64,000 nt of DNA, from sequence record NC_041884.1; one strand, written 5' to 3'. Each line of letters starts with the position of its first letter. Within the stretch, counting starts at the first letter, position 1. Under the pieces are notes generated by a model. It worked only from the letters and a program-made list of their open reading frames with translations. It did no database searches and was not told the origin of the DNA. Below, piece by piece: positions 22,239 through 45,167 of this stretch. The position numbers were made by a program, and so were the translations under genes.

Positions 22239-22360
22239 AATAATTAAGAAGATATATGTAGTCCCTAAGGCACGACATCCACTTGTTTAAATTAGAGAGA
22301 TCGTCACCTCTCCCAAGCCGCTCTACTACATTGGCGTATACATATATCTTATTAATTATT
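22239..22360 (-). repeat. 22-bp inverted repeat (1 mismatch) enclosing a 78-nt structured loop
   Basis: arms 22239-22260 and 22339-22360. Confidence 0.8.
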
Positions 22361-22362
22361 CA

Positions 22363-22794
22363 CTAAACAATAATATAAACACAGTCTTCATTTACATAAG
22401 GATGTAATAATCTAATTGTACGTTTAACTAATTTAGCATAGTTATCTTTTAACAACCCACCAGCACCAATATCAATAAAGACTCTAGTGATATTTGAAAC
22501 TCCAGGTTTTCCTCTAATAGAAGAGGAATCAGTACAATTAATAGAAAAGAAATATCCACCTGTACTTTTAGTAAACTCTCTAGCAGCTGGAATCTTATTA
22601 GCTACATATAAGTCTGTTGACGGATTAAAAATTTCTTTAACTTCAGTTGTAGTTCCAAAGCCACGAGGAACAGAATGAATTAACACTCGATGCTCTAATG
22701 CTTGATAAACATCTTTTGTATCAATATTATGTTGTAAATTATATTGATGTATTCTTGGAATTTGAATTCCTAGGAATTCTTTTAAGTGGTTCAT
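22363..22794 (-). CDS. hypothetical protein with a degenerate P-loop-like PRGFGTTT
   Basis: ORF track. Confidence 0.5.
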   Translation of the reverse strand: MNHLKEFLGIQIPRIHQYNLQHNIDTKDVYQALEHRVLIHSVPRGFGTTTEVKEIFNPSTDLYVANKIPAAREFTKSTGGYFFSINCTDSSSIRGKPGVSNITRVFIDIGAGGLLKDNYAKLVKRTIRLLHPYVNEDCVYIIV

Positions 22795-22825
22795 TAGTAT
22801 CTCCTAATGTACAGCTCTTCAGCAA

Positions 22826-23041
22826 TATTTTAAAATTGGATCCTAGATCATTCACCTTACAATATAGACAAATCTAGGAAAATCTATATCAGGGTGCTAA
22901 TGAGAGGGCTTGCAAGCAGTGGTCACATCTCTAGCTGCTTATACTCCGCAGAATATAAGTACCGCGACTCAACTGGTGATCAATGCGAGAAATTTATTAC
23001 ATTGTCATTATTCCAGGAGTAATCTTTTAAATTTTAAAATA
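22826..23041 (-). ncRNA. putative structured ncRNA closed by a 12-bp stem
   Basis: GC-richer ORF-free interval with TATTTTAAAATT/AATTTTAAAATA arms and internal hairpins. Confidence 0.45.
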
Positions 23042-23337
23042 ATTCAATAATATTCTCAGATAAGAGTTTACTAAGATCTTCATCTAATGGTTTGATTGTT
23101 TTAGCTCTTTCTTTAAGTGATTTTAAAATTTCTGGATAAAGAGCAAATGAATCATTATAAATAGAGAAGAAATCAAAAGTTGGTTTAGATATTGTTTGAG
23201 TAGAATCTGGATAACATTTAATATAAGGAACTCTATACATAATTACCAATTCCAGCACCAAGGCTTATGCATTGTTGTAGGTCCATGACAAACAGGACAA
23301 TATTTTATTTCTTCTGTTGTAAAGCCTAAAATCTTTT

Positions 23338-23709
23338 TCATGTTTGTAGAGTTTCCTCTAAAACCACTCTAATATATTTTTGTCTATAATGAGATTCTAT
23401 ACGAAATTCTAAAGGAACTGATACTTTAAATCCTTGAGGTATCACAACTGAGTCTTTAACAAAATTTAAGAAATCTACATCACTAGGAAATATTTGTCTA
23501 TATTTTAACTTAAGAGGAACAGATACAATCCAATAATTATGATTAGGATGTAATTTAATTTCATCAATTAGTTTCTGATTAATATAATCCTCTAATTCAT
23601 TCTTAAGCTTATTAAAATATTGTTTTTTATAGTCATCATAGGTTACATAACTAGTGTTTTCTATGACTTTAGATCTTAGTTCTTTAAGAGTTTCTAATGC
23701 AGTTTTCAT
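23338..23709 (-). CDS. hypothetical protein (true start MKTALE at 23709), paralogue of 38621-38956
   Basis: the track's upstream extension is a tRNA-Ser gene; both ORFs begin MKTALE.LKE.R. Confidence 0.65.
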   Translation of the reverse strand: MKTALETLKELRSKVIENTSYVTYDDYKKQYFNKLKNELEDYINQKLIDEIKLHPNHNYWIVSVPLKLKYRQIFPSDVDFLNFVKDSVVIPQGFKVSVPLEFRIESHYRQKYIRVVLEETLQT

Positions 23710-23726
23710 AGTATACTCGGAGAATA

Positions 23727-23819
23727 TGGCGGAAAAGGAGGAAGTCGAATCCTCAAGGCACTTATTCAGTACTCGACGCATTTCAAGTGCGCTGCCATCG
23801 CCAGTTGGCTTGCTTTTCC
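23727..23819 (-). tRNA. tRNA-Ser(UGA)
   Basis: GGAAAAG/CTTTTCC acceptor, G73-CCA, GCGCA-CTTGAAA-TGCGT, long variable arm, TTCGACT T-loop. Confidence 0.92.
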
Positions 23820-23824
23820 ATGTA

Positions 23825-23962
23825 TTATTTTTTCTTTTCGTTATCATTATTACAAGCTGCGTTGCTTAAAGAACTGCACTTACTTTTAGGACCATCGAAA
23901 AACAAAGCATTTGTAATAGTAGGAGTAATAGAAAGAATAATTATAAATATAACATTTTTCAT
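23825..23962 (-). CDS. 45-aa secreted peptide with two Cys
   Basis: MKNVIFIIILSITPTITNA signal-like N-terminus and an SD sequence. Confidence 0.45.
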   Translation of the reverse strand: MKNVIFIIILSITPTITNALFFDGPKSKCSSLSNAACNNDNEKKK

Positions 23963-26349
23963 GATATACCTTAATATGGTGTAATCAATAGTTACCTTAC
24001 ATACATAATTTATTGCTTCTTAGGATCAAATTCAATACCATGTTCGATCCAAGCAGTATTCATAGTTTCGATTTGAACATCAGCATAATACTTATCTAAG
24101 TCATCTGTTTTCAATGTAACACATTGGACACCAGGTTTATATGTATCTGTATAATACATCTTATTGGTAACTGCAAAAATTCTAATCCAAGCATACCTTA
24201 TAGTTCTTCCATCTTTTGTTGGAGGAGCAGGTGGGTCAACTTGAATATCAGCTTTACTTTTCTTTATTTTAAAAAGAACAACTATAAGTAAAATATTAAG
24301 AGCAACAAGAAAACCAATAATATGATAAGGAGTCATAGTAAAACCTTTAAGGAGTGTTCTTAGATTTTAATTCTTTAGATAATATTTTTGCTTTCTCTAA
24401 AGCTTCATGCAAACGTTTTCTAATATCTTCTCTAGTAAGATTTTCATTTACATTAAACAAGGTAGTACCAGAATTAGGAAAAGCTTGATTCCACTTATTT
24501 CCTAATTCAACTAAATCAATAATTTCAGGATTAAGGGTTTCTTCATTAAGATTATTTGAACTCAATTTTAAAATTTCCTAATAACTTAGAAATTATTTTA
24601 CTTATTTCTGGAGTAATCCTTGTAGTTAAAACTCCAGATGCCAATGATCTAATAGTAACCATATTATCATTTTTAGCATTAATGGTAATATTTAGAAGTC
24701 TTGTATTACTAATTGATATGACTTTATAAGGAATAGCTTCTTGCATATCATATGGAAGTTCAGGGACTTCACATAGATATGAAGTTTTAATTGAGACATC
24801 ATAGTTATTAATATCAATTTTATTTAAATAATCAATTACATCTTGATTCATTTCTGTTTATCCTACAATAAAGTCTAATTTATAATGCACTTAAAGTGAT
24901 ATTAAACTCTGGTAAAGGTACAATTATTCTATAATGAATATAAACTATATATACATAATTTTTAATATCTGTATAAATCGCTGTAATTTCAATTCCTTTT
25001 GACTCTTCAAGCCAATCATTTAGCTCTGTTTCTAATAATGCTTTACAAGATGCTTCAAATATTTTAATTCGATCATTCATTATCTAAGCCTTTATGTATA
25101 GCAGGGTTAGTTTTTCTTGAGTTATTATATCTCTATCTTATAATGAAGAGTTATATACAATCTGCCTGATTCGCAACTTTGCGACATATTTATAATATAA
25201 AATGTAGGATTAGCGATTAACCAACTATTTACATATTTTTCTAAATCCATTGCGTTTAAAGCAGAAAACATTTTTATTTGATTAATCATTACTAGAATTT
25301 TTAATTATCTCAGGATTTAGTTTAGTTCTAATAAACTCAACAAGACGTGCATCTTGAGAATCAGAACATACATTACAAATATTATCTACTACAGCATAAC
25401 ATCCAGTTTTATTTTCTCTCTCATTATACTCTTCAACTGTTAATTCTTTAACACCAGTTGTTCTTCTTTTACTTATATCAACATATTTTAATATTGTATA
25501 TAAGTATTCACCTGTGCAATTTTCTACTTGACATTTCATTTAGGACTTACACCAATAATAGTTTTAGTTGTAGGATTAACATATTTGTATTTAATACTAA
25601 ACAAGAAAGAATCACCTACAGATCTGCAACCACGATAACAAGCCCAAAAATCATTTGAATAGATTTTAAATGTACCTAATGAAGTTCCATAAGAGTCTAC
25701 TAAATCTACATTGTGAGTAGTACGATCTAATTTAGCAATAGTTAGATATTGATTTTTATAACAAATGGGATTAGTTTGAGAGCATTCAGGAGAATTTTCT
25801 TTATAAACACAAGCTGAACTAATTAATAAAAAGAAAGAGCATAAGAGAAGTTTAAAAAGATTCATATCTTATCTAACTCTATTAAAGAAAGTAATAGAGC
25901 CTTCATGAGGTATTGCAACTATTTCTAAAATTGAATGAATAGGATAATCAAAAGTACCAGGAACAAATTCATTCAATTCTTCTTTTAAACTATCAATATC
26001 TAATACATCAGAAATATTTAAAAGTTCTAAAGTATACTGTAATACTTCATTTTTATATGAGTAATATTCATCATCTTGCCAATTATATCTAAGGTTAGAA
26101 TTTTTATATTTAGTTCCTAATTCTTGTAAGGCTTTTCCAAATGCTTCGAAGAGTTCTCTATAAGTTGTCTGAAGTTTATTATAGGGCTCTCCCCAACCTT
26201 CGAAAACTTTTTTATTAAAATCAATAATATTGGTTTCAGTTACATAGTCAGCATCATTTTGATCAGCTTTAATTGAAACTACATATTTAGTCATTGAAGA
26301 ATACCTATTAATTATTATAATTATAAAATCTGGGACATGGAGCAACCAT

Positions 26350-26592
26350 TTTTATATAACTTATGCATCTGCATTTGATATCTAAATCAAAGTTATATAC
26401 AGCATGTCAGAACTGGCTGTTATTTTAAGAGGCACAACTATCTCTAATAATCTCACGTTATTATCACCGACCTTCTTTATGGTAAGATTATCCACTTAGC
26501 ACAGGCTTGCTAAGAAGCAGTAATACTTCAGGTCTATTACTCAACCCTGATACGTCTAGTGTATCACTCTATTCTCTTTTGCGACAGAGAAA
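26350..26592 (-). ncRNA. putative multi-hairpin ncRNA
   Basis: ORF-free gap with consecutive hairpins (TATATAACTT/AAGTTATATA, CTTAGCA/TGCTAAG, TGATAC/GTATCA, TTCTCT/AGAGAA). Confidence 0.4.
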
Positions 26593-27683
26593 TTTAGTTT
26601 GAAGTTTTCACTTCTAATTCTTTTTGATATGTTTCAACAGTCTTTTTAAAATTATCTTTACGAAGAACATCTTCTTTATTATTATAATCTGTATCTATAA
26701 ATGAACATAATTTTGTTGTTTTAATAACTGTATGATATCGTCTAGGTTCTTCTTCTCTTTTAATCTCTTTACAGATAACATCATCTGCATGTAAATTATA
26801 ATCATACTCTTTAGGATCAGAGGTACATGCAATTAAAAGAGAAGATAAACTTAAAATATAAATATACTTCATAATATTTACTCTAAAAAGAGATGGGATA
26901 GTTGTCAAATTTAAAAAATTGCCTATCCCATCTATTAATTGAAAATTAGTTAGTATTTACTACAGGTGTTTCAACAATATACCTGCCAACTCTTTCTTCT
27001 ATTTGAGTAATACTCTTATTGGGGCAAGTCCAAAAATTATCATTGTAGTAATTATACTTAACACAACCTATGCTATTTGTTGTTATTTTAATAGGCCCAT
27101 TTTTATATTTATTATAAAGTTTTTGTTTTTCTTCTTGTATTCTTTTTGGTTCATAATATTTCTTATCAATTTTAATTTCAATAGGAACTAATATGAGGAA
27201 ACTTAAACTTATAATGAAAGTCTTTTTAGCATTTTTTGAATCATTATCTATAATAAACAACAGTGAGAAGAACAATAATAAAAGAAATGTAAACAATGTT
27301 AAACAAACAATAAGTATCACAGTAGCAAACCTTCTTTATCAGGAAACAATTTTAGTATTAACCAACGAAAGAAATTTTGCATAATACTTCTCTATTGACG
27401 TTTAGTAGCTATGTAATCAACACCATCAATAGTAACAACAGTTTGGAGACGAGTTGTCTTACCTTCTGTTACAGATTGATTTGTAGATACTGTTGAATTA
27501 GGACATCGAATAATATTTAATTCGTGATCCATAGTGTCAGCTTGAAATTTATAAAGTTTACAATCTTCTAGCCCTTTAGTCATTGCAAGAGCTTTGCCCG
27601 CTACATATTCTTGACCTGGAGTTGTTGTATTGGGTTTATTACAAGCAGTTAATAATAAAGCTGTTACAGTAATAATAAATAGT

Positions 27684-28214
27684 TTATTCATAAGATAAAA
27701 ATTCTTTTAAGGTTTTAGCGACATTTAAAGAAAGATGAGTACCAACTAGCTGTAAAGGACATACTTTATCTTCAATTATAATTTGACGGATATCAGTTGC
27801 ATTTAAAGTATAATGACTGTGATCAATTATTACTTGAGTTGAATTATAAAGATTTTGTAGTAAGTTATTACTTTGAGTAGTAGCCGAATCTTTATTAAAG
27901 CAAACATTACAAAGTGTTGAAGACCCTACAATAGATTTTAATTCATTTTCAATAAATACTTTCCAATCTAAGTCCTTTACAAAATCAGGCAAAGCAACAA
28001 AAGTGAATCGATGTATATCATCTTTAAATGCTTGATAAAACAAATACTTCCTTTGATCTACAGAAAAAGGATTCTTTTGTGTTTTTGATTCTTGAGAAGA
28101 TCCAAGAAATACAATTACATTTTCTGCTTGATTTAAAGCTTCTTTTATTAGTTGTTCATGAGCTAAATGTAATGGTTGGAATCTTCCTACAACAAAAGCA
28201 TACTTAAACATCAT
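27684..28214 (-). CDS. NMN adenylyltransferase (NadM-like cytidylyltransferase family)
   Basis: VVGRFQPLHLAH HxGH-type motif, GSSQ...KNPFS, NATDIR. Confidence 0.85.
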   Translation of the reverse strand: MMFKYAFVVGRFQPLHLAHEQLIKEALNQAENVIVFLGSSQESKTQKNPFSVDQRKYLFYQAFKDDIHRFTFVALPDFVKDLDWKVFIENELKSIVGSSTLCNVCFNKDSATTQSNNLLQNLYNSTQVIIDHSHYTLNATDIRQIIIEDKVCPLQLVGTHLSLNVAKTLKEFLSYE

Positions 28215-29783
28215 TAAATCTCTTTTTCAAAGATAGGTATAATTCGTAATCTTCTTTTTTCTTTTGTTCAAGCCTTTCACGAATTTTATCTTCTTCTTCA
28301 TAAATGAATTGAACTAGATCTACACTTCCACGCACAGAATCAAATGTAGTTTCAGATAAAGGAATATTATTTGAATTACAAAAATTAAATACATCTATGA
28401 CAGACATATTTGTTATAGAATGACGTTTTGTATCTATAACACGAGATGTAGTTACAACATTACTTCCATCTTTTAACTTAATAGTTACATGTTTGTAAAT
28501 ACCATAAAGCATAGATTAAGAACCATTAAGAAATTGTCTAGTTAACTCTCGCTCTTGCAAGACAGTTATATAATTTTTAGCAATCATTACACCTTGAACA
28601 TATCCTAACCAACGATGTTTCTTCGTTATAGATTGTTCTTGATTTAATAGTAATTCCTTTAACATCCATAAGAGATGAACATCATTTGTTTCATCACCCT
28701 CTAAAGGACGAATAACTAACGAAGGTGACTCAGTTTTATAAACTTCTAAATTAAGAATAGTTATATAACGATTAATAATGTTTTCACATTGAAGTTTAAA
28801 TTCTTCTATTACACTTATTGACATTATTTAATTACCTTTCTTAGCACTGTTTTACATTCATCACTTTTAGTAAGAATAGAATATGAACAAACTTTCTCTT
28901 CTATATAAGAGATAGATGCATCATCACATTTCCAATAAAAATCATCATAGTATTGATATCGGTAACAATTCTGTCTGTGTTCTATAACTATTGGACCATC
29001 TTTGTATTTAATATCTTGTTTCTTTCTATATTCTTCTTTAGAAGGTATCATATAAATAAAGAAACTAATTAATAAAATATTAAGTAGAACAAATCCACAA
29101 ATAATTTGAGTAAGAGAGTATTTAGAAGTCATCAGGAGTTACAATACTTATTTAGTTTTTTCGACAAGTTCATAATCAGAAGAGGAATCTTCAATTAAAT
29201 TCAAGTCATTTAAATGTTCATACAATGCAGCTTGAAATGCTGAAATAAATATGGAGTTTTTACTTTGAGAATGCTTACTCGCATCTTCAAACTCTTCCCA
29301 AAATTTATCAATAGTTGCTTGAGATGGTTTAATCTGATGCCAATTAGTTAACTTTATTAAAGACTCTTGTACATCTCTTAAATAAGGTAAAGCGAATTGC
29401 TTAATTAGATAATTATCACCTAATTGTTTTTGAGATAATTCTAAGTTTGCAATAATAGTTTTTATTCTAGACTTTATAGATGGTTTTTTAGAATCATCTA
29501 ATATAAATAAACCCATATTAATAGTCACTTAAATTAATAATTACACCAGTATTGTATTGATTACAAAATTCCTTAACTACATTTGATACTTCATCAGACC
29601 ATCCATAATCTTTTCCAATACTTGGGTATAATTCTAGTAAAGAATTTTCATAATAAGGAATAACTTTATCTTTTTCTAATAACGTAATAAAACCATTCCA
29701 AGAATGATTGCATTCTTTCTCTGCAAATGATATGAAATCACCTAAAGAAACTATCATTTAATAATCCTTATTGAAATTATAGT

Positions 29784-30074
29784 TTACTCAAAACAAGATT
29801 TAATTTTATTTTGTATACTATTAGCAATTACAGATCGAGCACTTAAATAAGCTTTTAAAATACGATTACCTTGTTCTTCTGAAAACACTACATGTGCTGT
29901 AACACCATCCCATAATTCTCTAATAGGTGTAATGTCTGTAGCACACCAATACTTAACATCAGGATGTTCTTTTAAATGAAATGTTACCGTATCGAAATGC
30001 CAATCATGAGGCTTAGTATATAAACTAGTACAAATTTTCTCTACAGTATTTTCCATTGTGTCAAATTGACTCAT
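29784..30074 (-). CDS. hypothetical protein
   Basis: ORF track. Confidence 0.5.
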   Translation of the reverse strand: MSQFDTMENTVEKICTSLYTKPHDWHFDTVTFHLKEHPDVKYWCATDITPIRELWDGVTAHVVFSEEQGNRILKAYLSARSVIANSIQNKIKSCFE

Positions 30075-30085
30075 TTTAACTCTCT

Positions 30086-30796
30086 TTATCCGATATGGAG
30101 TATTCCTATACCACCATTAGCAATCCAAGGATCAACAGATTTCTCTCTATCATCAATTAAAATGTGATTTTGATAATCTGGATATAACTTAGTGACTTCA
30201 AATTTATTTTCAGTTTTATTTACAAAATGGGCATCAATCTTTCCAACATGCTCTTCTAACCAATCACGTTTAGCTTGTTCAATGTCTTTTGTATGACTAG
30301 TAGTACCAACAGCAGATAAAATTACAACATGATCGTACTTAGCTCTACAATACTTTAAAAGTTCAATACCTTTTGAAAGTGGCCACATATGCCTAAAGAA
30401 ATCATAAGTAAACAAATCTTCTTTAATTTGATCTTTTTCTTCTTTTGGTAATTTAGAGAAGTCATGAAGAGAAGGATAACTACCTTTAATATAAGACTGT
30501 TTTATATAACGAGTATTGAAGTCTGCAAGAACTCCATCCATATCAAAGTATATAATTGTCTTAGGTTTTAATGGATCAATATGAATAGGAACAATAGTAA
30601 ATCGAATATTGATATCTAAATCAAGGGAAGTATTAACTTCACAAATATAGAAACCTGAACTTACTATTAAATCTGTAATTAACTTTCGACTTGGTAGAAC
30701 GCCTTTTCTAAAACGACCACACCATGTATCATGATACCAAACACAAACTTGTTCAGTAGATTTAATAGGAGTTCTAATTAGTTCACTATATTTCAT
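30086..30796 (-). CDS. HAD-family 5'(3')-deoxyribonucleotidase with N-terminal extension
   Basis: YFDMDGVLADF, ILS, LIDDREK...W...GGIGI. Confidence 0.85.
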   Translation of the reverse strand: MKYSELIRTPIKSTEQVCVWYHDTWCGRFRKGVLPSRKLITDLIVSSGFYICEVNTSLDLDINIRFTIVPIHIDPLKPKTIIYFDMDGVLADFNTRYIKQSYIKGSYPSLHDFSKLPKEEKDQIKEDLFTYDFFRHMWPLSKGIELLKYCRAKYDHVVILSAVGTTSHTKDIEQAKRDWLEEHVGKIDAHFVNKTENKFEVTKLYPDYQNHILIDDREKSVDPWIANGGIGILHIG

Positions 30797-31873: not shown

Positions 31874-31886
31874 CTTTTGAGTCTCG

Positions 31887-31986
31887 TAAATTATTTAAGA
31901 TTGTAATCATACAATATTCTAATACAGATATTTTCAAGGCTAAGAGTTTTTTAAAACAGAATATGATTACAATCTTAAATAATTTA
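31887..31986 (-). repeat. perfect 25-bp inverted repeat with a 50-nt loop
   Basis: TAAATTATTTAAGATTGTAATCATA at 31887-31911 and its complement at 31962-31986. Confidence 0.9.
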
Positions 31987-32268
31987 TAGCTTTTAAGAGA
32001 GGTACTTAAATATACCTCTCATGGTAGCTCACACCTACATCACATTCTAGAATAATTATATAATTGCCTAGGTAATATAATTATCAGCCTTGATGATTTT
32101 TAAGGCTCAGTACCAACTTCTATAGTCTATCCGAAGAGGGATATATAAAATTATTAGTACCCGAATTCTTTATTTCCAGATTGGCATTACAAAATACCAC
32201 AATACATACAAGGATAATTTAAGATTCTAGAATTACAATCTTCACAATCCTCATAAAAATAAAAAGTT

Positions 32269-35200: not shown

Positions 35201-36808
35201 TTAGTTTTTCCATTCAGCATAAATAATAGGTATCTTCTTAATTGAATACTCAGGATACACTTTTTCTTGAAACCTTCTAGCAAGTTCTTTATTACTATTA
35301 CATTGCCAAGTTCGATCTAAATATTTCAATACATTATTTTCATTATCAACAACCCAATAATGATCAATATATATTTGGAACAATCCATTCTTAGGTTTAA
35401 CTAAATCATCAATTTTATATCTAGTAACCTGGTCTGCTCGAAAAGACATAACTATTCCTTATTATGTTTAAATGGTACTAAAGTAACAGGAACGAGTCTT
35501 TCTACATATTTACCTAATGGTTCTTTATTAGCCTTGATGATTTTACTTGCAAATTGGCCAGCAAGAGTATTTAAACCATAAACTTCAATAACTCTTTCAG
35601 CTTCTTCAATTAATTTACTATTGACAACCATATTCTTAAACCTTGGAGAAAGGGTCTCCATAACGTGTATCAATCCATTTGATATGATTACAAGTAGAGC
35701 ATTGATACTTACGTTTACTATACATTAAATTTCTATGTTCATCATAACATGCTCTATAATCACGATAGATCATTACATGCTGGCAAGATTTTACTTTTAA
35801 TAAAATAATAAAGAGTATAATAAAAGCAAATATTGCCATTACCACCACCAATGTATCATTACACGCTCACCTTCTTTAACACCTTTGTGTTCTAACCAAA
35901 GATAAATACGAGGGTAGCGTTCATACAACTCGGAATTAAGAGTAGACTTATAGAAGTAGTTATCATTTCCTAACTCATAATCAGCCCACAATTGTCTAAC
36001 TTCATCTTCAATAAAGGTAGGACAATCAGACCACTGAGCATCGAAAAACCAAACCTTTTCTACAGATTCTTGTTCAGTAACATTACAGCTACTACCAGTT
36101 GTAGAAGTGGAGTCATTAAGGCATTTATAGAATGTATCCTTCCCTTCTTCAATTGTTGTATATTTATCTTCAATTGGAGGAGCATCTCGAAGCTCTTCTA
36201 ATAAGTGAATATTATCTTTCCAAGATTTAATGTTTTCAATTTCATCTGAAGTAATAAGAATACAATCTATTAAATATTGAACTGCTTCTTTAAATCCTTT
36301 ATTAACACATCCTGCTAGTGTCATATGAGCATTAATATGATTAACAGGATAAATCCAAACTAAAGGTTCTACATTTTCAGGTATAATAAATTCAGCATCT
36401 TTATACCCTTCGATATAACCTTTAAGATTTAAATGAATGCCATTACCTAGAGTACAAAATAAATAACTAAGAAAAGCTTTCTTTGTTTTAAAAGAAGAAC
36501 TAAACATCAGTTTATAATCTAAATAGTCCATCATGAATACCTTAAGGGTTATAGTAAGGACTCGTAATAATATGTGCTAAGACTCTATTATGTTGGTCTA
36601 CATCTAAGAAAGTATTAAATTTTTGATAATCACTATTACAACGAATTTTAAAATGTTCAAATAATTTTGAACCAAATTCAGTTCCAAAGATTTCATCAAA
36701 AATCATAGGAGTTGCTTTATTTTGAAATTGAATAACACGTTTTTGAACTCTTGACCATATTTGAAGATCAAGCACTTCACTGTTTGTTAAACCATAATTA
36801 TTTGACAT
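32269..36808 (-). other. cluster of about 11 hypothetical genes
   Basis: coupled ORFs; 33512-33736 is a paralogue of 42979-43197 (MSKVL..I..QIK.DG.LPEH.EVLKLY). Confidence 0.6.
34057..34833 (-). CDS. protein with a C-terminal PTH2-like (peptidyl-tRNA hydrolase) domain
   Basis: LKMYIAVLDDVP...LVAHSVLGAH...W...FRKCVIRV. Confidence 0.6.
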   Translation of the reverse strand: MLKRTIPSAKAALEQIAQLREAEKEIDSIFGHSRTAIHFKHNPSDKPIFICKNGWVLRYFHTRPSDTSDYILYKQSDLDAAQDYDRIPVIEFNCDNHTLKFNKYGGATIHKNIPQEVIDIVREFVEDPQYKTTPIETKPTSYLKMYIAVLDDVPDFIVPTLVAHSVLGAHLKFEELGVGNFKSKVTYNEWLEHSFRKCVIRVNRREFDKIIKLPMQVYLGHENKTLNGEKSCAVVHPVSSDNVPNVLKFAKLWSPVCP

Positions 36809-36914
36809 CTGGAATTTCCTTTATATTCAATTTCAAAATAAAACTGAATAACTAACTAAGAGCCACGCTTAAATACAGAGTTAAAGATAACTCAAAAACG
36901 GACTACGTGGATTT

Positions 36915-36994: not shown

Positions 36995-37066
36995 TTGAGA
37001 AAATCAGATTCGAACTGATCACGGCCAGAAATTATTCTAGTGCTCTACCAACTGAGCTATTTCACA
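36995..37066 (-). tRNA. pseudo-tRNA with a collapsed anticodon loop
   Basis: TAGCTCAGTTGGTAGAGC D-arm, ATCAG-TTCGAAT-CTGAT T-arm, anticodon arm CTAGA-ATAATT-TCTGG, no CCA. Confidence 0.7.
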
Positions 37067-37191
37067 TGTGCAATGTTTTATCTATTTAGATACCAATATT
37101 CATTCATCATTTTTAAATACGTTGATGGTCGTATATCTTTATTAAGTATTTGCCTTAGTTAATTATTCAATCATAATGACTACCTAAGTAA

Positions 37192-37797
37192 TCAGTATTC
37201 GATCATTGTACTTAAATTGATTTCACTTAATGTAATATCAATTTCATTTTCTAAAAAGTCGATACGCTCTTGTAAGTTTTTAACAGTTTCTGTGATAGTC
37301 TTGGAGCTACCTGTTACAATACTTACGCCTAAAGTGTCTTGAAGTTGCTTATATACTTCTTCTTTTTGAGTAGCTTCAACATTAGATAGCTGACCTACAA
37401 TTGCTTGTTCTTGACGTTCTACTTCATTTTGAGCAGTAGATTGTTGACTTTTTAGAACACGCACATATTTCTTTTGAAGACTTAATGTTGATTTAATAGC
37501 TAGTAATTCAGTAATACTTACTTTACTTCCATTGAAATCAACTAAAGTTTCTAAATTCTTTTGAGCAATCTTAGTTTTAAGAGTACTAATTAATTTTAAG
37601 TTGCTTTCAACTGTATCAGTATCTGACTGGATATTAGTTAAAAGTTCTTGTTCGGTTTTGAAAGAACGATCTAAAGGACGTTTAGTTAAACCTTGAATAG
37701 TACTAACAAATTTACCATTAGAAAGTTTTTCATTAATAACGTTCTCAGCTTTTTTAATTAAAGTAAGAGCACGATGAATTGAAATTGTTTGAGTCAT
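37192..37797 (-). CDS. long coiled-coil protein (ISIHRAL...K N-terminus)
   Basis: heptad-rich sequence ending ID..LSE.N, strong codon bias. Confidence 0.7.
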   Translation of the reverse strand: MTQTISIHRALTLIKKAENVINEKLSNGKFVSTIQGLTKRPLDRSFKTEQELLTNIQSDTDTVESNLKLISTLKTKIAQKNLETLVDFNGSKVSITELLAIKSTLSLQKKYVRVLKSQQSTAQNEVERQEQAIVGQLSNVEATQKEEVYKQLQDTLGVSIVTGSSKTITETVKNLQERIDFLENEIDITLSEINLSTMIEY

Positions 37798-37830
37798 TTT
37801 AATATCTCATTAAAGTGTAATAATTAAAAA

Positions 37831-37949
37831 TAAATCACATAAGGATGCTAATAGAAATCAGGAACGGTACAATCTAAGAACAACATTACATATAAGGACA
37901 AAATAATGAATTTTTTTTTGAAATTCTATTAGCATCCTTATGTGATTTA
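37831..37949 (-). repeat. perfect 26-bp inverted repeat with a 67-nt loop
   Basis: TAAATCACATAAGGATGCTAATAGAA at 37831-37856 and its complement at 37924-37949. Confidence 0.9.
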
Positions 37950-37963
37950 AAAAGGTTAAAAAT

Positions 37964-38310
37964 ATATGGAAGACAGATAGTGTGTTGTTACACCAAATGC
38001 TCTAAGGGTCTGTATATGCGTCTCTAGATACTTTATTTCCACGTTGTTTCTCTAGATTAAGTGTAAGGCTTCGCCCATCATACACGTTGCTCCAGCATAA
38101 CTTCTAGAGGTGTCGGGAGCGCAATCTAACATTCATGCCTTTACCTAACCGCCCATATTACTTTCTGCATTACATATACAACTGTACTGGTCCTTCCCCT
38201 GAGTTTCTACGTTTAGACATCTTTTGGAATTAGATACTTATTACGGATCACTCTTGCAACTCTTTAAAAGATGGCTACCTTCAGGCCAACTTCCTAACTG
38301 CCTTTCATAT
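37964..38310 (-). ncRNA. about 350-nt ncRNA whose 5' part resembles 23S rRNA helices 42-44 (uL11-binding site)
   Basis: GTTAGGAAGTTGGCCTGAAGGTAGCCATCTTTTAAAGAG...CGTAATA...CTAAT...AAGATGT-CTAAAC; closed by ATATGAAAGGCAG/CTGTCTTCCATAT. Confidence 0.75.
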
Positions 38311-38326
38311 ATTTTCAATCACACTG

Positions 38327-39201
38327 TTATTGAGTTTGTTGCCAAGAAACTACTTTAGGGTAAGTTTTTAAATCATCAAGAGCTTCATCGATAGTATTAA
38401 ATCTACATGGACATATATGACCTTTAGTAAGATTTATATACGAGTAAGTATTATCATTTTTATTTCGTAATATCATTACTTCAACAATACCATCTGTTCG
38501 TGTAATTTCTAATTTCAAAAGAATCCACCTTGATGTAATGTAACTAAGAAACAAACTATTGCAACAACAATAAGTATTATGAAGATAACTCCTAATACCA
38601 TTAAAATAGTTGAAATCATATTAAACTATTTCCTTAAAACGGATCCCAATTTCATTGTAGGCTTCTATATACGTTACAGCACCATCAATTTCAAAACCAA
38701 CTGGTTTTTCTACAATTTCAGTAATGAATCGAAGAAGCGTTCTAACATCAGTAATAGTAGTTAAATAAAAACCTTTTAATGGTAAACGAACTATCCATGT
38801 ATCAATAGAAGGGCATTTTTTGATACCTTGAATTAAGGTAACATTAATATCTTCTTCAATCATATTTTTTAAATTTACTAAACTAGCATTCATAGTAAAA
38901 GGTCTAGAAACTAATTGTTCTCTACATTCTTTTAAAACTTCTAAAGCTGTTTTCATAGTTACTCTTCAATATCTTGATATGGATGTAATACGTAATCTTC
39001 TAAAAAAGAATCTATTGAGTCCCATTCAAAGAAACAACATTGGTCACCTTCAGGACAAGTTGCAAAGATTTGATTTTTATACATACGAGCAATTAAAGAT
39101 GCATTAGCTACATCAAAATCCTCATCAGGGTATTTTAAAATAATCTCTTTACATTTAGATTTAATTATTTCTTTAGAATCAGATTCTTCATATATTTTCA
39201 T
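38327..39201 (-). CDS. three small hypothetical proteins
   Basis: ORFs 38327-38554 (start probably internal), 38621-38956 and 38959-39201. Confidence 0.55.
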
Positions 39202-39220
39202 AATTAAATCTCAATTAATT

Positions 39221-40880
39221 TATAAAATTACATTTACTGTTGGTTCTTTCGACAACACTTTTCGGATTTTATATGAAGATCGTATCAAAGGTTCTAGCTT
39301 CGATCCTCTGTTGTCATGCACCTCTAAACATTTGTGTGGTAACCCACTCACTGAACCTTATCAGCTTGAACTCAATGTGCCACCCAGAGATTACTCTGAC
39401 CTCATTTATGTTGTAAATGTAATTTTATATTTAAATAATAAGAGCCAAGTCTTCACAAGAGGATGGATTCGAACCACCGACAACAGTAGGGATTTTACTG
39501 CCTACAATACTCTACCGACTGAGCTACTCTGCAATTTCCACTCTCTTATTATTTAGATGGTAAGAATATAAGTTAGTGTTAAGACGTTGATACATTAGGT
39601 ATTACCCTAACGCCAAGAGTTGAACTTGTTAAAAACCTTCTGTAACCCAACAACTATCTTTATTACTGGACAGTAATCATCTGAGATTATTAACCTATAC
39701 CGTATTCTTACCTCTAAATAATAATTAAAAGACATCTAATAACCTAACTTCAGATAAGGGTACTTACTCGATTATCATGAGACTCTACTAAATGTCTTTT
39801 AATTATTATTTAAAAGGTGTGAGGTACAACTCTCACAATGAACCATGTAGCCATTTTGGTTAGCGTCAAGCTGTATACAGCTTAGTTTCTCTAGTCAGCC
39901 CGCTTTAGGTTGTCCCTAATTGTGTGATATCAACACTACCATTTTTCTATCTTACGATAACACCAATGATCAAGTGCTTGTGGTACTAGAAGTCATTAAG
40001 GTGAATATGCCTTTATAGATCATACCAAATCTACAGGCCCATCACTCCCTTCAAATTTTATTACGCCACATCCTGTTTGGACTTACACCGTGTTGGATGT
40101 TATTTATCGGTAGAATTTGAGCCATTAACCAGAGCGCATTTATTAACTTATACTTTCATATAAGATTAGACCTTTTAGAGTGTCCTGATTTCTCAAGCTG
40201 AACTCTATTACCATCTCATATAAGTTGTCAGACTTATACTAACTACTTTTAGAATTACTCCTAATTTCGAGTGTCTCTACTATACAAAGGATAAATCCTT
40301 CTTAGCTATTATAACCATATGAAATAGAACCTCACTTAGAATTATAATATTTAGGTAATTGAGGAAAAACATGAGAATATAAAAGCATACTGCCATAATA
40401 TACGAGCCGTTAAGCCATCAGAATCGAACTGAGTCCTCTTTTATACCTCGATGCCCTTCATTATCGAAAAAGGGCTTTGGCACAATTGTGTTGTGCATCT
40501 CGTATCACTTGAGGTAATAACTCTTGGAATCTAGCAGAGGAGCGACCTCTCTTATTTTATATACCGATTGGATTCTTGTCTCGGTTTGTGGGTCTATTAC
40601 ATGTCATCGTTTCTCAGTTGACAGTGAGGGATCTACAAAAATTGGAATAGACTGACAATGGAGGTAATCATTAATCCCCTATTACAGAGATTAATCCTAT
40701 AGAATGCCTAAGAATTTCAGTTGCAATCTTACATTCAAAAGGACTTATATCAATTAGTATATTGGACAATATGTTCTGGAGACGGATTAGGCGTCTCACT
40801 CTTTTACTAAAAATTAGTAAACGCTTTTAGCCTCGGATTAAGAGACATTCCACTACATTTTAAGCTACAGACCTCAATAC
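39221..40880 (-). ncRNA. 1.7-kb non-coding cluster of stem-closed structured RNAs
   Basis: no credible ORF; abutting inverted repeats 39221/39429, 39432/39555, 39552/39718, 39715/39812; several T-loop-like hairpins. Confidence 0.7.
39454..39533 (-). tRNA. pseudo-tRNA with an expanded or alternative anticodon arm
   Basis: TAGCTCAGTCGGTAGAGT D-arm, GGTGG-TTCGAAT-CCATC T-arm, GTAGG-CAGTAAAATC-CCTAC (10-nt loop), bulged acceptor, no CCA. Confidence 0.65.
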
Positions 40881-40905
40881 TTCCAATCATACTAAATTCT
40901 ATACA

Positions 40906-41346
40906 TTATATAGAAACTGTTTTACAAACTTTTGATAAAATAACATCATCAAAAGAATTCTTTGTTATTTGTTGCCACTTAATAGAAGAGGAATTTGCAT
41001 CTCTTACATATTTAGCATCTTTTGTAAATTGTACATACCTGACTATAGCAGATTTTCTTAAAACACAACTATAAATATTATAGATCAGTAATACATCACC
41101 ATCACTAGCAAAGTCATTAGTTGATGATTGTATATGCACAATAGCAGGAACTGAGTAAACTAAAGGACGAATTTCAACAATAGCTTTAGGATTTACATAG
41201 TACTTATCTGTACTTGTTTCTCCAACTTTATACCATGACTTTTCAGCTGTCATTAATTCGATATCACTTTGTACTAATTCTGCATTAGCTTGGATTGTTG
41301 TAAATAAGGAACAAGCCATTAAAGCTAAAATATAAAAATATTTCAT
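40906..41346 (-). CDS. secreted protein (surface-adhesin-E-like pattern)
   Basis: signal peptide; WYKVG...YYVN...YSC...W..I...S.D...L..VC. Confidence 0.5.
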   Translation of the reverse strand: MKYFYILALMACSLFTTIQANAELVQSDIELMTAEKSWYKVGETSTDKYYVNPKAIVEIRPLVYSVPAIVHIQSSTNDFASDGDVLLIYNIYSCVLRKSAIVRYVQFTKDAKYVRDANSSSIKWQQITKNSFDDVILSKVCKTVSI

Positions 41347-41843
41347 TATTTTAAATCCTTCTCTTCTATTAAGGTTATTCGTCTACATAATCCTTGAGAT
41401 TTATCTTTAGCATAAGTTTTAACTAATTTAAAATAAGATTTATTAGGAATCTTTGTAACTATAAATTCAAAGATTTTATTAAACCATATAGCTAAATATG
41501 CACATAAGATAAATATAAATATAATAGCTGAAAGAGTACCTACTACAAATTTAAATAAAAAACCCATTAATAAAAATGGATTAAAACTAGTTAATTCTCT
41601 TGTATCAAAGATTGTTATTGTTTTAACAGCATAAACTAAGATTACACTACATAAGAATAAATAAAGAATAGCTTTCAGTAGTGTAGAAAATAATGTACAA
41701 ACTGATCTTAAGCAACAAAGAGGAGACTTTGGGTTTTCTGGATCAAAACGAGTAACAATCCAACTTGTTAAGAAAAAGTTAGAACAAAAACAAAGAAATT
41801 TGTATGTCTTGCTATTAGCACTTAATTCAAAATTATCATTCAT
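41346..41843 (-). CDS. membrane protein
   Basis: hydrophobic segments; start probably MNDNF. Confidence 0.55.
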   Translation of the reverse strand: MNDNFELSANSKTYKFLCFCSNFFLTSWIVTRFDPENPKSPLCCLRSVCTLFSTLLKAILYLFLCSVILVYAVKTITIFDTRELTSFNPFLLMGFLFKFVVGTLSAIIFIFILCAYLAIWFNKIFEFIVTKIPNKSYFKLVKTYAKDKSQGLCRRITLIEEKDLK

Positions 41844-41988
41844 TATGGATGACCTCTTCCTACGATAGTTAAGAGAATCCATGCAAAGAAGCCTAAAGCA
41901 CCACTTAGTACAAAACTTGCTATAATGATAAATTTGATAACACCTAACACATCTGATTTTGTCATGGAGTTTATCCTTAAAGGGAATA

Positions 41989-42046
41989 TATGTTTAAAGG
42001 ATAGAAAGGAAACTGGAGCGAGAATCCTTTCTATCCTTTAAACATA
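41989..42046 (-). repeat. perfect 22-bp inverted repeat with a 14-nt loop
   Basis: TATGTTTAAAGGATAGAAAGGA and its complement. Confidence 0.85.
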
Positions 42047-42049
42047 CAC

Positions 42050-42613
42050 TTAAAAATATTTAATAAATTTACTTAAGTGTTTCTTTTTTATTTTAAAAGA
42101 AGTACTTTCAATTCCACCAAACATTTGACAATTAGCTAGTATCTCTGCCCAAGCAGTTAAATACAAACTAAATCCTATCTCTGATTGAATTAGTTCTTGT
42201 GCTTTTTCATCACTTGCTTTTAATATATGGAAATCCATATCATGTTTAACAAGATCATGACCTATTAAGAGATGAGGAAAGAGTTGTTTATATATCTCAT
42301 ATGACACTTGTGCATGATTGGGAAACTGTTGTTTACCTTCTTCATTTACAATTCTACAATAAGGCTTTCCTAAATCATGATAGATTTGATAATGCTTCAT
42401 TGTTTCATAATCTAAGAGAGTAATCCAATTCTTTTTATATACTTCTATAAGGGATTCAGGAACACCTTCAGGTACTACTCCTTTTTCTAAAGAAAGTAAT
42501 AGCTTTAAATATTCATTATTAACCATTAAACCATGTTGATACATATTGACATTTTCAAACTGATAACAGTTCTTCATATCTTTAAGTACCTTATCAAAAG
42601 TTAAGATCTCCAT
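42050..42613 (-). CDS. HD-domain phosphohydrolase
   Basis: QHG...YHDLGKP...FPNHA...HDMDFH...D-type motifs. Confidence 0.75.
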   Translation of the reverse strand: MEILTFDKVLKDMKNCYQFENVNMYQHGLMVNNEYLKLLLSLEKGVVPEGVPESLIEVYKKNWITLLDYETMKHYQIYHDLGKPYCRIVNEEGKQQFPNHAQVSYEIYKQLFPHLLIGHDLVKHDMDFHILKASDEKAQELIQSEIGFSLYLTAWAEILANCQMFGGIESTSFKIKKKHLSKFIKYF

Positions 42614-42936
42614 AACTGATATCTCCTCAATAATATTCTTTGGTCTTGAGTAAGAGGTTCAGTTCCGAACGCTGTGAGACCATAGTCCCAAGAAGGTTCG
42701 AAGAAAGATATAGTTTTGATACCTTTAGTTTCTAAATCTTTTATAGCTTTCTCTAATTGATATTGATTTTTAACACCAATCACTACTAAAGAACTAGGTT
42801 CAGATTGATCTCTGTCACCTAAATATATTCCTGCTTCTAAAGCAGCATGGCCAGCTTGAACTATTTGTTGTTCAACTGGAATATCTCTTCTAACAAACAC
42901 ATAAGTATGTTTTTTATTTTCATGAATCTAAGTCAT
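42601..42936 (-). CDS. PTH2-like peptidyl-tRNA hydrolase with an in-frame TAG at codon 3
   Basis: ATG ACT TAG ATT CAT GAA AAT AAA AAA CAT ACT TAT GTG TTT GTT AGA AGA GAT: the upstream codons are in frame with YVFVRRDI...QAGHAALEAG...F.EP...GLTAF.TEP. Confidence 0.8.
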
Positions 42937-42978
42937 TAATTTTTCTCTATAAGTTAATATAAATTTTTGTGAGTTTAA

Positions 42979-43197
42979 TTACTTATTCCAAGTCTTAAAC
43001 AGTTTCAACACTTGAGGTTTAACTGAGTAAACAAAAGTACCATTAACAAACTTAGCATTAGTTAATTCATTCCAAAGCATAGTACTACTAAGATTATTAT
43101 TAACCATAAAATTATATAATTTTAAAACTTCCATATGTTCAGGAAGTTCACCATCTTTTTTAATTTGAGCTTTAATTCTGTTTAATACTTTACTCAT
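42979..43197 (-). CDS. hypothetical protein, paralogue of 33512-33736
   Basis: shared DG.LPEH.EVLKLY; strong AGGAGG SD. Confidence 0.7.
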   Translation of the reverse strand: MSKVLNRIKAQIKKDGELPEHMEVLKLYNFMVNNNLSSTMLWNELTNAKFVNGTFVYSVKPQVLKLFKTWNK

Positions 43198-43218
43198 GGT
43201 ACCTCCTGTTTAAGATAC

Positions 43219-43343
43219 TGGCGTTGCCAACTGGGAGTCTAACCCTAATAGAACTTCAATATTATAACCATGTCTAGAATATTATAATATCGTCTACAGC
43301 CTTTCTCCTTCGAATGGAGCTGTGCTACGTACACTATGACAAC
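43219..43343 (-). tRNA. 125-nt atypical tRNA-Arg(UCG)-like RNA
   Basis: GTTGTCA/TGGCAAC acceptor + G + CCA, GTGT/GCAC D-stem, CTCC-ATTCGAA-GGAG arm extended by ACAGC/GCTGT, about 45-nt variable hairpin, TTAGACT T-loop. Confidence 0.6.
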
Positions 43344-43347
43344 ATTG

Positions 43348-43421
43348 TGGTCCAAAATCTGAGATTCGAACTCAGACGCAGGGTTTTAGGGACCCCTGTG
43401 CTACCATTACACCAATTCTGG
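43348..43421 (-). tRNA. tRNA with CUA anticodon (amber-suppressor type), C at position 33
   Basis: CCAGAAT/ATTTTGG + A + CCA; GGGGT-CCCTAAA-ACCCT anticodon arm; CTGAG-TTCGAAT-CTCAG. Confidence 0.8.
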
Positions 43422-43426
43422 AAAGG

Positions 43427-45167
43427 TTACTTCTCAGATGCAGCTAATATACCACAACAAAGAATTAAAGCTACAAACAAACTACCACCAAATTGGTAGA
43501 ATGGTGTAGCATAAGAAGGAGTAAAATAGTTCGTAAAAGCAATAGCAACAATAGCACTAATAACTACTAGTAAAACCATAGCTATGATTATGCCTACACC
43601 TATTAACATACCTTTAAGAAATTTCAATATGATTTTCATTTTGTTTTATCTGATCTAAAGTATCTTCTTCAGCTTGCATGTTTACAAATAATTTAATCTG
43701 TTTTTGAAATATATCTTTCATATCATTTGAAACATTTTTAAAGTTAGGAATTGCTACAGGTTCATCATTCCAAATAGAATTTTTATTTGACATAAGCTAA
43801 AGCCTTAGTGATTGTAGATAAATGCATCTCTTCTACTTTTAATTTTAATTGTTTAATATCTTTTATTTCGTTAAAGAATTTAGAACGAATACCAGTAAAA
43901 CTAAAAAGAGTTGTATCTTTAGTTGTTTTATCAATATGTACAAATCCAAAAGATGTTTGAGCTGTAAAACTTAAAGGAGATTCAATCCACTTTATTTTAA
44001 TAACTTGAGCCATATAACACCTAATTAACGATAGCTTATCATACCTAAAGATTTTAATTTTGAAATAATTGCACCTGAAGATCTTTTATGTAATCGAGCA
44101 ATTTCTTCGATACTAAGTTTTTTATTAACCCATTCATCTCTTAAGGCTTTAACTTCTATAGTAGTCCATTCTGAGTATCCTCTATAATCAAAGTAATGAT
44201 TATATTGAGTAACTTCTCTATCTCTTTTTCGAGTTTGCTCTGGACTAGAATACATAGTTGGATAGTAATGTATTTCAGTTTTAATTGGATCAGGTAATCT
44301 ATTTACTTTTCTATCTAATTCTTTTTTCAGCTCTTCTTTAAGTCTTTCTTCTGTTTCTAATAAGAGTTTTTTAAAGTTACATATAGTAATACTGAGGACT
44401 AGGAGGAAAATAGCTGTCATACCTACAACAGTAGCTATTAAATCATTCATACTTGATTCCAAAACAATAAGAAAGAAATATTAAAAAGACAAGGTAAAAA
44501 CCTATATTACATATAATTAATTGAATTATTAATGAGAAGTTAATCTTAGGAGCAGAATTAATCATACCTAGTGTACAAACACAACAACCTAGTAATGATA
44601 GATAATGAATTACTTCATACATATAAATTCTCTTTAAAGATGGATAGGACAGAAGGAAAGGTAAAACACGAAAAACAACAACACAGGAGATATGTAATCC
44701 TATCCATCTTTAAAGAGAACGTAAAGGAGTTTTAATGAGACTATTAATATTCTTCACCATCATCATTACTCTCCTTTAAATTTTCTTCTAATTCTTGAAT
44801 ACCTTCATTGATATGCTCTTCATCATCTAATTCATAATCTTTCTTAGAATTAGAATGAATCGAAGATTTATTAAAGGTATTCATATGCTTTGCTATAAAG
44901 TTATTTTTCATAAGGAATAAATTTCCAACGATCTAACTTTCCATAATATTGCAACTGATGATTCTCTAGAATATAGACAAAGCCAGAATCTTCTTTTTCA
45001 CATTTATTTAAAAAAGATTGAATAGTTTTTGAACTTATAACTTTAGAAGGAATCTTACAATAATGAGCATTGTCATAATAACGATAGAAATGTAATTGTG
45101 GTTTTGAATAAATAACTTCATCATAAACACAATCTAACATTTCACTAAATAAGACAAATTTAAACAT
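43427..45167 (-). other. cluster of small hypothetical and membrane genes
   Basis: ORFs 43427-43639, 43783-44013, 44025-44462 (C-terminal WT..E...L...H.RS.GAI..KL HTH-like), 44901-45167 and several peptides under 60 aa. Confidence 0.55.
44628..44719 (-). repeat. perfect 22-bp inverted repeat with a 48-nt loop
   Basis: TTCTCTTTAAAGATGGATAGGA at 44628-44649 and its complement at 44698-44719. Confidence 0.9.

Follow-up and report, generated by a model that had tools for sequence, protein, structure and literature searches.

Long closing stems in sense transcripts of Acinetobacter phage vB_AbaM_ME3 as candidate RNA-processing signals

We analyzed a window of 64,000 nucleotides (nt) from sequence record NC_041884.1, which matches Acinetobacter phage vB_AbaM_ME3 (NC_041884/KU935715, 234,900 bp; hereafter ME3) at 100% identity and in which 6 long hairpins, here called B, C, E, F, G, and H, are dispersed between 22 and 45 kb. 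These hairpins exist and have been selected as RNA stems of the ME3 coding strand; within a series of RNA modules closed by stems, they are the members with short inserts. Tentatively, and with a confidence that falls just short of even, we read the stems as double-stranded RNA punctuation at the boundaries of genes, tRNA-like RNAs, and non-coding RNAs, probably cut by host RNase III. Positions are those of the window, which spans genome positions 124001-188000, so that the genome position is the window position plus 124,000.

ME3 is an Acinetobacter jumbo phage, and between 20 and 47 kb of the window every annotated gene lies on the minus strand, the region consisting chiefly of small hypothetical genes with interspersed tRNAs and long non-coding gaps. 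Hairpins, terminators, and promoters are not mentioned in the genome announcement (PMC5000817), which also states a G+C content of 40% vs the 30.8% that we measured (27-33% within the window). No close relative of ME3 was present in the phage isolate collection, and comparisons were made with relatives from public assemblies at 73-99% identity (L013, L017/L021, L018, L019, L023-L026, L032, and L033).

The 6 inverted repeats had been predicted from the sequence alone as a set of unrelated hairpins; all 6 are present at the positions given, as are the loop sequences quoted with them. We scanned the whole genome for hairpins with loops of up to 130 nt, using 30 locally composition-matched Markov shuffles as the control, and identified 29, 13, 11, 9, and 6 hairpins with at least 17, 19, 21, 22, and 24 paired bases, respectively, vs shuffle means of 1.9, 0.37, 0.13, 0.07, and 0. 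The 9 that reach 22 paired bases were all located in non-coding gaps of the minus-strand gene block, gaps that account for approximately 6% of that block, and 4 of the 9 were additional to the predicted 6 (genome positions 99418-99471, 217502-217569, 227122-227178, and 231484-231590). Each stem sequence is unique in the genome, in keeping with the description as unrelated, but several hairpins have motifs in common: most begin with TAAAT and carry a sub-terminal TTAAAG/TAAG(G/A)AT, and E, G, and H have in common a GGAU(A/G) stem core along with pyrimidine-rich loops. The common stem motif was not in excess in the ME3 genome over the shuffles (35 against approximately 26, 195 against approximately 190, and 42 against approximately 45), and the idea of a dispersed repeat family was dropped for this reason.

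On the coding strand, the hairpins occupy unit boundaries. B, G, and H start 0-20 nt past a stop codon, B directly past that of gp313 and G 3 nt past that of gp267, while C, E, and F come after structured non-coding RNAs. The next start codon is 14 nt from B (gp314), 13 nt from C (gp287), 33 nt from E (gp275), 19 nt from G (gp268), and 1 nt from H, where an unannotated 59-amino-acid open reading frame (ORF) begins (44443-44622, minus strand).

Folded as RNA, 12 of 13 hairpins were more stable as the minus (coding) strand than as the plus strand, with differences reaching 10 kcal/mol. In 12 stems, 30 positions are not Watson-Crick pairs; 14 of these form G.U on the minus strand and 2 form G.U on the plus strand, and 3 independent single changes in relatives each yield G.U on the minus strand. 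Because of this excess of G.U and the higher fold stability on the minus strand, we infer that the stems have been shaped by selection on the gene-strand RNA. The hairpins act as RNA within sense transcripts and not as separate antisense genes. The original prediction had placed the structures on a minus-strand transcript, and as minus-strand RNA they do work; the minus strand is, however, the coding strand, so the transcripts are sense ones.

Changes seen in relatives at E, G, and H, together with the loss of F and the replacement of E described below, show that selection is on pairing; the sequences of stem and loop are not conserved, nor even is the presence of a hairpin. Hairpin E (37831-37949, minus strand) has a stem of 26-28 bp with 26/26 or 27/28 bases paired, a pyrimidine-rich loop of 63-67 nt, and a U5 run 3' of the stem. 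Among 5 distinct sequences, 25 pairs were compared, with 98.4% of cells paired, 6 double-sided changes (including A-U to U-A swaps), and no one-sided change; the covariation score exceeded that of 500 out of 500 shuffles and of every slid register. A wastewater strain (run X1) has other sequence in place of E (loose ends at 37834 and 37975), and the strain carrying this replacement was not recovered in metagenome scans. A homopolymer in loop E (37903-37911) is A9 in ME3 and L018 and A13 in L017, and in run X1 it is shorter by 2; because 454 sequencing was used for ME3, its length in the record may be unreliable. In a related clade with gp275 approximately 50% identical, similar long stems are present on the coding strand (L028 3080-3231 and L027 15114-15267), one of them a 31-bp stem closing a three-hairpin insert (-61.8 kcal/mol vs -41.4 kcal/mol on the other strand).

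Hairpin G (41985-42050, repeat 41989-42046, minus strand) has a stem of 22-26 bp (22/22 paired) and a CU-rich loop of 6-14 nt. At this locus the relatives carry 4 different stems, all of them perfect helices of 18-22 bp with loops of 14, 20, and 45 nt; the variants include 1 G-C to C-G swap and 2 cases of C to U that leave a G.U pair, and a further variant in run X1 (42009 G>A) gives G.U in the minus-strand RNA. The upper part of G is replaced in L013 and L032. Hairpin H (44624-44723, repeat 44628-44719, minus strand), with a stem of 22-24 bp (22/22 paired) and a 48-nt pyrimidine-rich loop, shows a G-C to A-U change in L013 and matched 1-nt deletions in both arms in L033, with the loop diverged and rebuilt by indels in relatives. 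Pair counts based on alignments run low for G and H because variants with different upper stems misalign, and single-sequence folds are the better evidence for these 2 hairpins. Distant IMG/VR relatives of gp267 (37-48% identity) yielded no syntenic hairpin and are therefore too remote for this comparison. The 59-amino-acid ORF behind H has a lipobox-like LLGC, and its frame is kept in L013 with mostly synonymous changes.

Hairpin B (22237-22362, repeat 22239-22360, minus strand) has a core with 23/27 bases paired and 47-nt arms matching at 72%; the stem extends imperfectly to approximately 45 bp and encloses a 72-nt structured insert that is richer in G+C (fold -40.1 kcal/mol, z = -4.9). Hairpin C (31887-31986, minus strand) has 25 perfect pairs, or 36 nt at 86%, along with an inner helix. 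Upstream of C is a conserved structured non-coding module of approximately 190 nt (31987-32175) that ends in a small G+C hairpin, and the stretch from 31880 to 32180 folds at -84.8 kcal/mol (z = -6.1); the gene upstream of this module is not the same in ME3 and L021. Both B and C are identical in L021, the sole relative covering both, and for this reason carry no covariation information. A further inverted repeat, D (36714-36844, 21/24 paired), has a loop containing the Shine-Dalgarno (SD) sequence, start codon, and first approximately 20 codons of gp276; it was excluded from the set, being kept in relatives but with no covariation and with 1 broken pair in L023.

Hairpin F (39711-39816, repeat 39715-39812, minus strand) has 31 pairs (27 Watson-Crick and 4 G.U), repeat arms of 27 nt matching at 93%, and a structured 44-nt loop. 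It is a 91-nt element within the U-rich tail of a small terminator-like G+C hairpin (39818-39837), and it is missing from L023 and L024, where the small hairpin runs straight into the U-rich tail and is an ordinary terminator. The insertion comprises an inverted copy of the flank with no direct duplication. Immediately upstream in transcription order lies a structured non-coding RNA of approximately 1.06 kb (non-coding RNA 1; 39815-40872, minus strand), which ends at the small hairpin before F.

Non-coding RNA 1 is abundant in environmental RNA. Words of 39202-40905 were present at 15-45% in 20 RNA runs, the majority of them metatranscriptomes of lake water (84% in 2 wastewater runs that are probably DNA). 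When assembled contigs from 3 lake or aquatic metatranscriptomes were compared with window positions 37800-43799, coverage was essentially confined to 39815-40872, along with 38014-38294 in 1 run (X15) and a single further contig of 151 nt, also from X15, at 41360-41510 inside gp269. The contigs of non-coding RNA 1 carry natural variation of up to 23 differences per 640 nt. The 5' edge at 40870-40872 was observed in 2 runs and the 3' edge at 39815 in 1 run (X17), the latter 1 base into the T run past the small hairpin and at the 5' base of F; since the DNA-like wastewater run crosses F unbroken, this edge is not an effect of assembling a repeat. With the abundant RNA ending at the base of F, and with a plain terminator in the genomes where F is absent, F is therefore not the terminator or 3' protector of this RNA.

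The same RNA is modular, with conserved cores (15 compensatory pairs in 3 cores) and variable inserts, and it includes a T-arm-like UCAGUUCGAUUCUGA. It had no Rfam family at gathering or relaxed thresholds; across 21.5-45.5 kb, the same searches returned only tRNAs, with a group I intron elsewhere. In size and tRNA neighborhood it is comparable to the GOLLD/ROOL-type phage RNAs (10.1101/2024.12.08.627333), to which it has no match. Within it, an element of 74-77 nt (40063-40139, minus strand; L022 1501-1577) shares 87% identity with a slot of tRNA size that lies, unannotated, between the tRNA-Arg and tRNA-Phe genes of the Klebsiella phages KP13-26, FKP3, and KP2025. This element has 2 compensatory pairs in a 6-bp helix, and further genomes in run X1 contain it as well (loose ends at 40062/40063 and 40136).

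The 6 hairpins belong to a wider series because like stems close 3 larger units on the minus strand. The annotated 'tRNA-Tyr' (39454-39532) is closed by a 16-bp stem (39429-39444 with 39543-39558). It scores 30 bits against the Rfam tRNA model (gathering score 29), receives no ARAGORN call, and has an oversized anticodon loop; in L023, an unrelated stem-loop takes the place of the anticodon arm, with no loss of the acceptor, D, and T arms or of the closing stem. Given the weak tRNA scores and the swapped arm, it is a tRNA-like RNA that may not work as a tRNA. Directly after this module, a 175-nt non-coding stretch (39214-39436) is closed by a 20-24 bp stem (39214-39237 with 39413-39436; fold -55.9 kcal/mol, z = -4.0). 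Directly upstream of E, non-coding RNA 2 (37950-38326, 377 nt) has a terminal stem of approximately 20 bp (approximately 38294-38314 with approximately 37958-37978) around an insert of approximately 335 nt; this stem shows 2 compensatory changes and 1 change from G.U to A-U, and the RNA contigs of run X15 noted above cover 38014-38294 of the unit.

RNase III cleaves duplexes of approximately 20 bp or more, and it processes the early polycistronic mRNA of T7 and the long stems flanking rRNAs; in T7 and T3 early mRNA, bacterial rRNA, and T4 tRNA precursors, its duplexes separate or flank the matured RNAs. With 22-31 pairs in ME3 and 18-24 bp in relatives, on the transcribed strand, the stems described here are duplexes of this kind, and they resemble those of T7/T3, rRNA, and T4 tRNA in being intercistronic or flanking duplexes of approximately 2 turns, in lying on the sense transcript, and in marking unit boundaries. 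We propose that the hairpins are cis-acting closing stems in the sense transcripts of the early-gene and tRNA/non-coding-RNA region, in which 5' and 3' flanks pair over 22-31 mostly A-U pairs around a variable insert, from near nothing (G) through a pyrimidine-rich loop (E and H) to a small structured RNA (B and F). Placed after a stop codon or after the small terminator of a non-coding RNA, and long enough to form at least 2 helical turns, the duplexes may be substrates of a nuclease specific for double strands, for which host RNase III is the simplest candidate. Cutting would part neighboring cistrons, free or trim whatever RNA is enclosed, and disconnect the ribosome-binding sites downstream, the site in H lying inside the stem. 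The modules are gained, lost, and swapped among related phages.

This reading accounts for the constancy of pairing and of stem length where the sequence itself can change freely, for inserts ranging from 6 to approximately 335 nt, for the position of F beyond the 3' end of the abundant RNA, and for stems around true tRNAs in the related systems described below. Several observations weigh against it. T7 sites have internal loops, receive a single nick, and leave a protective 3' hairpin, whereas the ME3 stems, for which cleavage is putative, are almost perfectly paired, consist very largely of A-U, and enclose 6 to approximately 335 nt; a perfect stem cut on both strands leaves no such hairpin. 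The contig end at 39815 comes from 1 run and may be due to the small terminator or to a 31-bp stem through which cDNA synthesis is poor. Since F can be absent and E replaced, no single stem is essential, and pure processing does not explain the conserved pyrimidine motifs in the loops of E, G, and H.

An unlikely alternative is that the stem-closed small RNAs are excised as Y-RNA-like ligands and bound by a phage protein of the Ro60 type, gp248, which they would gate or tether. The partners of Ro60 are Y RNAs, whose defining layout is a long stem formed by the two ends around a variable module, pyrimidine-rich in animals; Y RNAs and YrlA gate or tether Ro60/Rsr. The foremost candidates under this alternative would be the tRNA-like module and B, with E, G, and H as possible further ones. 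The protein (gp248; 49080-50522, minus strand) is annotated as an 'RNA-binding protein' with Pfam DUF2828 and the vWA-type DUF7788; its gene adjoins that of a CCA-adding enzyme and lies on the same strand as the hairpins, 4.4 kb upstream of H in transcription order. A profile search of solved structures placed Ro60/TROVE proteins at the top, weakly, and language-model neighbors fell in TROVE and vWA_Ro60 clusters. An AlphaFold model (predicted local distance difference test [pLDDT] 86, predicted template-modeling score [pTM] 0.86) had Ro60/Rsr/TROVE proteins as all of its 13 best PDB matches (E 8e-9 to 2e-7, template-modeling [TM] score 0.47-0.60), from frog, human, Deinococcus, and the Thermus phage phiLo; gp248 is thus predicted to have a Ro60 fold over its full length. 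A phage Ro60 has been reported previously (PMC12135203).

The gp248 family has more than 540 matches in IMG/VR, usually beside large tRNA arrays. At 69 IMG/VR loci with gp248 relatives, long same-strand hairpins cluster beside the gene, 61 upstream vs 6 downstream, within these arrays, and several begin with the conserved stem start CACUUUAU. Some enclose genuine tRNAs (L168 4948-5045 and L202 2142-2241) and others hold non-tRNA inserts of 50-93 nt. Since the stems of these other phages enclose genuine tRNAs, they are hardly terminators or antisense RNAs. A conserved RNA of approximately 132 nt, closed by a CACUUUAUA...UAUAAAGUG stem, also occurs in tRNA arrays of other DUF2828 phages (L133 6916-7047, L141 1224-1355, and L143 13765-13897; no Rfam family at L141, the locus scanned) and is a candidate partner of the Ro60-like protein.

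The stem-closed tRNA-like RNA of ME3 agrees with the Y-RNA layout. In YrlA, which occurs in bacteria and phages, a stem of the 5' and 3' ends closes a tRNA-like module, with a Ro-binding motif GNCGAA(N)G near the 5' end, less than 4 kb from the Ro60 gene (PMC4201824). Only 39429-39558 resembles it, with its 16-bp end stem around a tRNA-like domain of T and D arms. GNCGAA(N)G was found in no 5' arm or linker of the ME3 stems, the closest match being GUGGAA in the tRNA-like module, and Rfam matched no Y RNA or YrlA between 21.5 and 45.5 kb. The CACUUUAU stem motif of the other DUF2828 phages is not enriched in ME3, and the ME3 stems have no common sequence long enough for 1 specific binding site. 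Most hairpins lie more than 4 kb from gp248, on the same strand (range 4.4-28 kb; H at 4.36 kb, the tRNA-like module at approximately 9.5 kb). No discrete small RNA was observed, and the loop of G has only 6-14 nt. The 160-nt gap just downstream of gp248 (48507-48667) was considered as a Y RNA and rejected, as it reads as a conserved 31-amino-acid ORF. We hold as rather unlikely the broader view that the region is an RNA island of gp248, the CCA-adding enzyme, RNA-repair genes, stem-closed RNAs, tRNA-like decoys, and the ornate, highly abundant RNA of approximately 1 kb, where the hairpins would be Y-RNA analogues in a phage RNA quality-control or counter-defense system distinct from the YrlA family; closing stems would dock on the Ro60-like ring, and pyrimidine-rich or tRNA-like inserts would recruit partners.

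That the hairpins are unusual intrinsic terminators or attenuators, in which a stem with A-rich sequence 5' and U-rich sequence 3' of it would stop or pause host RNA polymerase between transcription units, seems improbable to us. In the outer arms, A does predominate 5' and U 3', the stems come right after stop codons or non-coding RNAs, and E is followed by U5, as the hairpin at genome 217502-217569 is by a T-rich run. Intrinsic terminators as known, however, have a short G+C-rich stem and a loop of 3-8 nt with a U run directly behind, which stems of 22-31 A-U pairs with loops of 44-72 nt do not resemble; loops in the set measure 14-72 nt, most stems have no U run (E being the only one of the 6 with U5), and a consensus terminator scan called none of the 6. 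F itself comes after a canonical small terminator, and the RNA ends ahead of it. Moreover, the next start codon follows within 1-33 nt with no recognizable promoter between; a sigma-70 promoter scan gave fewer matches than the shuffles, and word enrichment in the non-coding gaps identified no promoter consensus tied to the hairpins.

The nearness of these start codons (B, C, E, G, and H end 1-33 nt ahead of one) and the composition of the loops also bear on translational control, in which pyrimidine-rich loops or arms just ahead of a ribosome-binding site would serve as S1 or ribosome-standby platforms or as anti-SD masks of the next start, lifted once the stem opens. The loops of E, G, and H are 60-79% pyrimidine vs a background of 49% and contain 1-6 words of the CUCC/UCCU/CCUU type vs 0.2-0.8 expected, in all variants, with 3-6 such words in loops of 45-67 nt and 1-2 in the 14- and 20-nt loops of G. 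SD-like AAGGA/GGAU occurs in the 5' arms of E, G, and H, and its complement in their 3' arms and loops, a pattern conserved across relatives; in the 3' arm of H, an SD-like AAGAGAA is, from its sequence and position, likely the SD of the 59-amino-acid ORF. Such motifs are absent from B, C, and F, however, L032 has a weakened form of the alternative pairing between the G 3' arm and the ribosome-binding site of gp268, and F precedes a tRNA-like RNA and not a coding gene. We consider a translational explanation of the whole set to have little probability; the loops may have a local role in translation or in protein binding.

[quoted passage not shown] F, E, and G are present, absent, or replaced among relatives, F resembles an insertion with its inverted copy of the flank, similarity between ME3 and L013 breaks off inside G, and 2 short metagenome contigs stop at its edge. 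The asymmetry of G.U over A.C, however, points to selection on 1 RNA strand, no common terminal repeats, target duplications, or extra genome copies of the stem motif were found, and all copies lie in gene-strand non-coding gaps of 1 gene block. A functionless origin is very unlikely. Nor do the hairpins fall within 2 described families of stem-loop elements. The PeSL cassettes of T4-like phages combine short G/C-clamped stems with a sigma-70-type promoter and are mutually homologous (PMC2839356, PMC4122927); like these, the ME3 hairpins are intergenic stem-loops in plastic early-gene regions, linked to indels and module swaps, but their stems are 22-31 bp and mostly unique, with no promoter consensus in or beside them. 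Correia elements (nemis) of Neisseria are approximately 100-150 bp long with inverted ends of approximately 26 bp, and their mRNA hairpins are bound or cut by RNase III (PMC2649163). They likewise vary in presence between strains, as do F, E, and upper G in the ME3 relatives, but are a family of many copies whose ends are conserved and which duplicate a TA target, whereas the ME3 hairpins are single-copy and have neither common ends nor duplications.

Hardly tenable is the model of the original prediction, in which loops displayed on protective stems are trans-acting antisense RNAs or anti-SD decoys against host mRNAs. Anti-SD-like loops do occur in E, G, and H, and CAU-N7-UCCUU, which on the plus strand is AAGGA-N7-ATG, is kept in 4 diverged variants of loop E; the other 3 of the 6 loops (B, C, and F) have no such motif, the spacer and the remaining loop vary, and outside the motifs the loops diverge fast with indels and replacements while the stems persist. 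No extended complement of the loops was found in the ME3 genome, only chance-level matches of at most 15 nt, and no Acinetobacter was among the 80 of 95 hits listed for an exact 18-mer complement of loop E in 185,579 species genomes, which came from scattered taxa. No stable loop RNA was seen in the 3 metatranscriptomes, where RNA contigs stop at the base of F, and hairpins such as F and E are dispensable or replaceable; a general SD sponge would, in addition, strike phage genes too. Most loops fail the tests that came with the prediction (complementary targets, loop conservation, and a stable RNA) for specific antisense action on host mRNAs. The plus-strand ORF starting from the SD-ATG of loop E, with 8, 41, 39, 6, and 2 codons in 5 variants, was rejected as a small gene, its length not being conserved.

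Further observations were made elsewhere in the window. A group I intron (Rfam, 81 bits) occupies 14639-14975 and 15267-15461 inside an 816-nt non-coding gap that adjoins a tRNA-Met and a tRNA-Leu(TAG) called by ARAGORN only. An unannotated tRNA-Ser(TGA) with a good T arm was called by ARAGORN, with no Rfam match, in the gap between gp310 and gp309 (23727-23819). An inverted repeat with 24/28 matches has its arms 1.2 kb apart inside gp319 and gp316 (20147-20174 with 21383-21410).

The hairpins are unusual in their length and range of inserts, and they lie within an RNA-rich island of a jumbo phage. Early regions of jumbo phages are annotated as strings of hypothetical genes, and the "gene desert" of ME3 is partly a chain of RNA modules, in which a kilobase-size non-coding RNA, near a protein with a predicted Ro60 fold, outnumbers all nearby phage mRNAs in environmental transcriptomes. 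This abundant RNA of approximately 1 kb and the assignment of DUF2828 to the Ro60 fold are the most surprising by-products of the analysis. If the stems are processing signals, they would provide a simple grammar by which mRNAs, tRNA-like RNAs, and stable RNAs are cut from long transcripts in such phages; should they instead be ligands of the Ro60-like protein, Y-RNA biology would extend to the DUF2828 phage proteins, which are present in hundreds of viral contigs.

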